Shown here: positions 38,715 to 38,887 of the stretch, in pieces | Layout of the letters: each line of letters begins with the position of its first letter | Numbering within the stretch: the stretch's first letter is position 1 | Assembly: GCF_036321535.1 (NCBI RefSeq) | Contig: NC_087444.1 | Span: 77,872,001 to 77,936,000 of the forward strand | DNA length: 64,000 bases | Direction: 5' to 3' | From: Camelus dromedarius | Lineage: Eukaryota | The notes under the pieces: generated by a model | What the model was told of the DNA's origin: nothing | Seen by the model: only the letters and a program-made list of their open reading frames with translations | Databases searched by the model: none | Position numbers and translations under genes: made by a program

Positions 38715-38887
38715 CTGCAGATCTGGTTGTGCAGGAACCTCCTGTGGTTGGGCCTCCTTTTTGGGGGCCGGGTCCGACGGGGGTGCAGGGTGCGCAGTAT
38801 GTGGGCAGCTGCCCCGCTCACAAAAGCACACAGCTCCCGGGGCCCTGGCTCGGAGATTCCAGGGGCTGCAGGAGCCCCGGGGTGCAT
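38715..38887 (-). CDS. C19orf85: C19orf85 ortholog exon 1 ([58 protein letters not shown])
   Basis: ATG at 38887, donor AG|GTGAGG. 173 nt. Joined CDS is 633 nt = 210 aa. Syntenic position between ISOC2 and ZNF628. Confidence 0.88.

Follow-up and report, generated by a model that had tools for sequence, protein, structure and literature searches.

The question raised by this locus is whether a conserved helix at the N-terminus of C19orf85 serves as a TEAD-binding element. The gene lies in a 64,000-nucleotide stretch of the dromedary (Camelus dromedarius) genome (contig NC_087444.1, positions 77,872,001 to 77,936,000, forward strand), which is called the window here and to which all positions below refer. 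A reading made from the letters alone (the sequence-only reading) had described the encoded protein as a divergent nuclear factor of the FAM181 family. It further proposed that the N-terminal helix occupies interface 2 of TEAD, and that the protein may act in this way as a weak or competitive modulator of the Hippo pathway. The observation on which this proposal was built was confirmed, and its interpretation was found to be partly supported.

Gene structure and genomic neighbourhood

The sequence-only reading had placed a coding segment of C19orf85 at 38715-38887, which proved to be exact: on the minus strand this interval is the first coding exon of a gene with two exons. The exon starts with an ATG at 38887-38885, comprises 173 nt and is followed by a GT donor at 38714. 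Exon 2 (33662-33203, minus strand) is preceded by a polypyrimidine tract and an acceptor AG at 33664-33663, and is closed by a TGA at 33205-33203. The spliced coding sequence of 633 nt yields a product of 210 aa, which is letter for letter identical to P0001, a protein named in nr as 'uncharacterized protein C19orf85-like [Camelus dromedarius]'. The peptides quoted earlier were both recovered in this product, the exon-1 peptide as aa 17-58 and its continuation in exon 2 as aa 59-70. The gene is laid out as follows:

38715..38887, minus strand: coding exon 1 of C19orf85, aa 1-57 and two bases of codon 58; the spliced product is P0001
33663..38714, minus strand: phase-2 intron of about 5.05 kb, with N runs at 35083-35240 and 36782-37082
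33203..33662, minus strand: coding exon 2, from the third base of codon 58 through aa 59-210 to the TGA

An unspliced ORF of 204 aa was also observed at 33203-33817 (minus strand), running from the intron directly into exon 2. It corresponds to P0002 from the Logan assemblies (99% identical). This ORF looks like an intron-retaining or genomic read-through call and not like a real isoform. Products consisting of exon 2 only were likewise seen in other species (P0106, P0061 and P0088).

The camel protein belongs to the C19orf85 group (human A0A1B0GUS0; mouse Gm36210), being 71% identical to the human protein over its full length. The two-exon layout and the conserved blocks of the group are as in camel. 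The 210 aa of the camel product compare with 222-228 aa in primates and rodents, the camel tail being slightly shorter.

When the flanking ORFs were scanned with Pfam, the domains around C19orf85 were, in order, Shisa_N, C2H2 zinc-finger, GNAT and SRCR. The ISOC2-like ORF gave no Pfam match. This order of domains fits the SHISA7-to-SSC5D neighbourhood of human 19q13.42, which we take to be arranged as SHISA7 - ISOC2 - C19orf85 - ZNF628 - NAT14 - SSC5D. Of the SHISA7-like gene, two exons were seen, at 11876-12604 and 17527-18489 (minus strand); one of them carries the Shisa_N domain (E 5e-17), and the other is C-terminal and ends in an E-V-T-V tail resembling a PDZ ligand. At 50766-54053 (plus strand) an ORF of 1095 codons was found, which contains C2H2 zinc fingers and is broken by two N-masked runs; an 11-aa unit is repeated in tandem towards its end, and it is presumably ZNF628-like. 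Further along the plus strand, an ORF for a GNAT acetyltransferase (NAT14-like, 56289-56831) is followed by two SRCR-domain exons (SSC5D-like, 58937-59605 and 62868-63467).

Architecture and conservation of the protein

The full-length protein was modelled with AlphaFold2 (AF2) from a 38-sequence eutherian alignment, and the N-terminal module alone from a 43-sequence vertebrate alignment. Two helices were confidently predicted in the full protein, at aa 16-34 and aa 48-76 (pLDDT ~90-97), and the same two helices were obtained with the module alone (mean pLDDT 87). Exon 1, together with the opening 18 codons of exon 2, was found to encode one compact module, composed of an amphipathic helix, a Pro/Arg/Lys-rich linker and a long second helix, which is split by the phase-2 intron after aa 57. 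Past about aa 80 the model is of low confidence and the chain is predicted to be disordered. A Pro-rich, probably disordered tail had been anticipated from the sequence, in line with its Pro content of 20% and with pLDDT values below 50 from aa 139 onwards.

Four blocks are conserved across the family: the N-terminal module, a FLGVAEAF-type block, a block with the core [DE]xLF[DE]DI, and a Trp-rich block at the C-terminus. In the camel protein the following elements were delimited, from the N- to the C-terminus:

38786..38842, minus strand: helix 1 of the N-terminal module, aa 16-34 (AF2 pLDDT ~90)
38747..38785, minus strand: basic Pro/Arg/Lys linker, aa 35-47, NLS-like, with a putative NLS role
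38715..38746, minus strand: start of helix 2, aa 48-58, containing the invariant stretch NHRRFL...R and cut by the phase-2 intron (AF2)
33608..33662, minus strand: rest of helix 2, aa 58-76 (AF2 helix 48-76, pLDDT 96-97)
33551..33607, minus strand: Pro-rich spacer, aa 77-95
33518..33550, minus strand: second family-wide block, aa 96-106, with the consensus F-L-G-V-A-E-A-F in other vertebrates (present in 134 of 215 family proteins)
33425..33493, minus strand: third block, aa 115-137, acidic-hydrophobic, core [DE]xLF[DE]DI (core present in 119 of 215 family proteins)
33215..33286, minus strand: Trp/Gly-rich block near the C-terminus, aa 184-207, with moderate conservation in mammals

Within the third block a short helix is predicted at aa 118-122. 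A conserved C-terminal region of C19orf85 is also mentioned in the legend of Fig. S5 of an earlier study (PMC9710580).

The charge of the protein is unevenly distributed, with a net value of +9 over aa 35-58 and of -8 in the tail. The NLS-like stretch noted by the sequence-only reading was indeed present, at aa 35-47, and may act in nuclear import; in amphibians and reptiles the linker reads T-K-R-K-V. A basic helical unit of this kind might instead bind nucleic acids or associate with itself, without being a docking site for another protein. The net charge would suit such a function, and so would the invariant cluster of Arg, Asn and His at the start of the long helix. Profile searches of the PDB gave chance-level matches only, and the weak ones of the module were the ribosomal proteins eL29 and eL36 (E ~0.3), a likeness that reflects basic composition. 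No significant match to a DNA- or RNA-binding family was obtained in Pfam or in the PDB, however, and the fold searches were empty. A homodimer prediction for the module scored 0.02, which speaks neither for nor against self-association. Taken together, a nucleic-acid-binding or self-associating unit is considered very unlikely.

The conservation of the module was evaluated at several depths. Across 32 mammals its mean column identity was 89%, and a protein search returned 99 mammalian C19orf85 matches with E values down to 1e-96. A profile of aa 1-80, built from 32 mammals, was searched exhaustively against 1.84 billion representative proteins, which resulted in 89 matches at E<=1e-3. The module was present in about 80 of them; the remaining matches were a few exon-2-only fragments, which align with the end of the profile only, and an unrelated repeat protein (P0181). 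In this search, orthologues from mammals to lamprey were recovered with E values of 1e-15 to 1e-43. The named C19orf85 orthologues were from a marsupial, platypus, turtles, squamates, amphibians, bichir, teleosts, a shark, lamprey and hagfish. They vary widely in length, those of amphibians (360-430 aa) being roughly double the mammalian length and that of bichir reaching 669 aa.

A single invertebrate protein was matched by the module profile, namely P0180 of the hemichordate Glandiceps talaboti (381 aa, E 9.6e-7). It is a candidate pro-orthologue of FAM181 as well as of C19orf85. Further along the chain, at aa ~139-152, it has P-Q-R-S-R-A-L-P, in agreement with the published I3 consensus over its first half (PxxxRxLP) but with no SFF after it. 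Judged by the range and the significance of the matches, the N-terminal module is old and strongly constrained, and its recurrence goes beyond chance likeness.

Kinship with FAM181 and PERCC1

The sequence-only reading had regarded the protein as a relative of FAM181 and had supposed that the link might already be found in the PERCC1/FAM181 literature. Both suppositions were borne out by the literature. C19orf85 was described as a FAM181 member without recognisable TEAD-interaction motifs by Sanchez-Pulido, Jia, Hansen and Ponting in 2022 (PMC9710580). In their analysis, the Nt-F region that FAM181A/B have in common with C19orf85 gave reciprocal profile matches between FAM181B aa 59-106 and C19orf85 aa 12-61, with E values of 1.8e-8 and 2e-6 (PMC9710580). 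The N-terminal regions of FAM181, PERCC1 and C19orf85 were reported as homologous within a predicted helix, which is the conserved N-terminal helix of PERCC1 (PMC9710580, Supplementary Fig. S6). On this published account the vertebrate FAM181 family has C19orf85 as its third member, which is already known. With the link to FAM181 and PERCC1 in print since 2022, together with the lack of TEAD motifs, the present observation carries little weight as a discovery.

The kinship was also suggested by two comparisons made here. In the ESM Atlas, the nearest clusters other than the protein's own carried PF15238 or the name FAM181B, with likenesses of 0.95 and 0.92. A vertebrate-wide profile (A3) scored 46 bits against a putative fragment of FAM181B given by the sequence-only reading, equivalent to E 3e-7 at the size of the exhaustive library, and 20,000 shuffles of this fragment reached at most 13 bits with the same profile. 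With the narrow mammalian profile the fragment scored 21 bits (E ~21 in the exhaustive library). The breadth of the profile explains why FAM181A and FAM181B were missing at E<=1e-3 from the exhaustive search of 1.84 billion proteins: the mammalian aa 1-80 profile used there is too narrow.

Other methods did not reach beyond the C19orf85 group. Word-seeded protein searches with exon 2, camel aa 1-80 or axolotl aa 18-92 found C19orf85 orthologues only and never FAM181. When the whole model was compared with AFDB/Swiss-Prot by Foldseek, human C19orf85 was retrieved together with noise from disordered stretches, and FAM181 and PERCC1 were absent. With the model of the module, neither AFDB/Swiss-Prot nor the PDB yielded a match, and the Atlas yielded generic helices only. 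A feature search of the Atlas with aa 11-79 alone gave the protein's own cluster only (0.76). Homology of the module to Nt-F was accepted on the basis of the published profile matches (PMC9710580), the language-model likeness and the score of the putative FAM181B fragment.

Two further affiliations were considered and rejected. For a POU2AF-like protein, the POU2AF clusters of the ESM Atlas reached only 0.76-0.77. The basic region of bZIP proteins is marked by the signature N-x2-AA-x2-[CS]-R, which the basic stretch of C19orf85 does not have, and the bZIP-like reading was discarded.

The TEAD question and the role of the module

The absence of an omega-loop, which had been noted for the camel protein, was confirmed, and strict and relaxed omega-loop patterns matched none of 215 family proteins. 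PF15238 (TEADIR3) was detected in none of 26 family proteins, camel included, at E<=10 (Pfam), nor in 10 further ones at E<=0.01. Pfam scans of the exon pieces, of the whole protein and of 35 other family members revealed no other meaningful family. The interface-2 type motif LxxLF was present in 8 of the 215 proteins and VxxHF in one, at non-homologous positions, and camel C19orf85 has neither. Profile searches of the PDB with the module, the whole eutherian protein and the amphibian tail detected no YAP, TAZ, VGLL or FAM181 peptide chain at E<=10.

The closest known proteins compare with C19orf85 as follows. FAM181A and FAM181B (PF15238 TEADIR3; PDB 6SEN) possess the omega-loop/TEADIR3 motif, whereas C19orf85 has neither of the two and no LxxLF helix. 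Through the omega-loop, FAM181A/B co-immunoprecipitate with TEAD4. PERCC1 resembles C19orf85 in its small size, its Pro-rich and mostly disordered chain, its narrow expression and its association with the gut; however, it retains a central I2&3 TEAD-binding region with a conserved Ser216 (PMC9710580), which C19orf85 does not. The likeness to YAP and TAZ is limited to a distant family context and short amphipathic helices, and interface 1, LxxLF and PxxxRxLPxSFFxxP are all absent from C19orf85.

The equation of the N-terminal helix with TEAD interface 2 was not supported. In the published domain scheme, Nt-F (or Nt-P) is drawn apart from the I2&3 region for TEAD binding, and FAM181B and PERCC1 have both (PMC9710580). 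In these two proteins the I2&3 region is the more C-terminal of the two. Since Nt-F coexists with a separate I2&3 region in these two proteins, it is not I2. The LxxLF of FAM181B lies 54 aa before its omega-loop (PMC7784741). The premise that binding of FAM181A/B via an interface-2 helix is established was also shaky: according to a review of crystal structures (6SEN), FAM181A contacts TEAD via interface 3 only, and FAM181A/B are without the helix element (PMC10146773). The idea of binding through interface 2 only arose because Nt-F and interface 2 had been merged into one module. The N-terminal module of C19orf85 is read here as Nt-F, which is made up of a helix, a basic linker with KRxVNHR[RK][FY]L and a further helix, and as distinct from the TEAD interface-2 helix.

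Some features would nevertheless be compatible with C19orf85 lying in the TEAD groove by its N-terminal helix alone, without an omega-loop, and acting as a weak or competitive Hippo-pathway modulator. Helix 1 is amphipathic and confidently predicted, and its hydrophobic residues stand at i, i+3 and i+4 (L-x-x-F-V), with the same spacing as in LxxLF. The family as a whole is linked to TEAD (PMC9710580), and VGLL1, VGLL3 and VGLL4 bind TEAD without interface 3 (PMC10146773). Against this stand the separate I2&3 region beside the homologous one in FAM181B and PERCC1, and the lack of recognisable TEAD motifs in C19orf85 (PMC9710580). The sporadic, non-homologous occurrence of LxxLF and VxxHF and the failure of the module profile to match any TEAD-binding chain searched for in the PDB argue in the same direction. 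In YAP, interface 2 alone adds little affinity. An interface-2 role for the N-terminal helix is therefore regarded as highly improbable.

The tail offers a different lead to TEAD. An extra block, G[LF][IV]..D.N...W[LMV]PE, was observed in amphibians about 50 aa after LFDDI (alignment A4; for example P0189 aa 169-239 and P0191 aa 206-276). In several frogs it closes with W-L-P-E-S-F, which is similar to the LPxSF core in the omega-loop of YAP, a likeness with no statistical support.

It could be supposed that the LFDDI block is a decayed interface-2 helix and that W-x-P-E or LPxS[FW] is a decayed omega-loop, in which case lineages such as anurans and turtles could still bind TEAD and mammals would do so weakly, if at all. 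The LFDDI block takes a VxxLF form, V-E-S-L-F-D-D-I, in anurans and a caecilian, and the amphibian block that ends in W-L-P-E-S-F in several frogs follows about 50 aa after the LF motif. This spacing is like that of FAM181B, in which LxxLF precedes the omega-loop by 54 aa (PMC7784741). In turtles the LF motif is followed, 8 aa on, by L-P-P-S-W, and a Trp is found at the F96 position in FAM181A. On the other hand, there is no Arg at the position equivalent to R89, and the Ser and Phe vary across amphibians (W-V-P-E-V in urodeles, W-L-P-D-V in Xenopus). The first Leu of LxxLF is not kept in mammals, fish or reptiles. PF15238 was not matched at E<=10 by any of 10 amphibian proteins, the profile of the amphibian tail matched no YAP, TAZ or FAM181 chain in the PDB, and likenesses of five residues arise easily by chance. 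TEAD remnants in the tail are thus considered unlikely.

The same motifs could be arranged as a stepwise loss. The C19orf85 lineage would once have had a FAM181B-like order of I2, long linker and I3. The VxxLF...LPxS[FW] remnant of anurans and turtles may then bind TEAD, and mammals, the camel among them, keeping no more than an LFDDI-type helix and a W-x-V-P trace, would be TEAD-independent competitors for the partner of the common N-terminal module. This scenario, drawn from motif comparison, is unlikely.

The reading preferred here, with a probability of roughly three in four, is that the camel gene is the orthologue of C19orf85, that it carries the N-terminal module of the family and not a TEAD interface-2 helix, and that its product would work as a co-regulator that does not depend on TEAD, or else compete for a shared partner. 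The protein would be brought into the nucleus by the basic linker acting as an import signal. There the helix pair may dock on a partner common to FAM181A/B and PERCC1, and the disordered acidic tail might recruit further factors via its FLGVAEAF-type and LFDDI-type motifs. The outcome would be co-regulation independent of TEAD, or competition for the shared partner. That the protein is a nuclear co-regulator is made plausible by PERCC1, which, when supplied exogenously, is found in the nucleus and changes transcription with no YAP/TAZ signature (PMC12881181). Expression of human C19orf85 is narrow, mainly in gut and colon (PMC9710580), and in one preprint the gene marks an epiblast population alongside naive-epiblast markers. 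By analogy, the PERCC1 data and the narrow expression are consistent with the proposed TEAD-independent co-regulator.

For annotation, the correction that follows is that the conserved N-terminal module should not be labelled as an interface-2 element for TEAD. The module stands apart from that element and is of great age, being found in cyclostomes as well as in one hemichordate homologue. Its partner, once found, would explain a feature common to FAM181A/B, C19orf85 and the disease gene PERCC1, and this is the real question at the locus.

Expression in camel was looked at through assembled RNA-seq contigs, which cannot show splicing. For the interval 33100-33700, eight RNA-seq runs, which belong to two studies with samples from the reproductive tract, contained at least half of the sampled words. 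With the tissue taken from the study label, these exon-2 contigs hint at expression outside the gut in camel.
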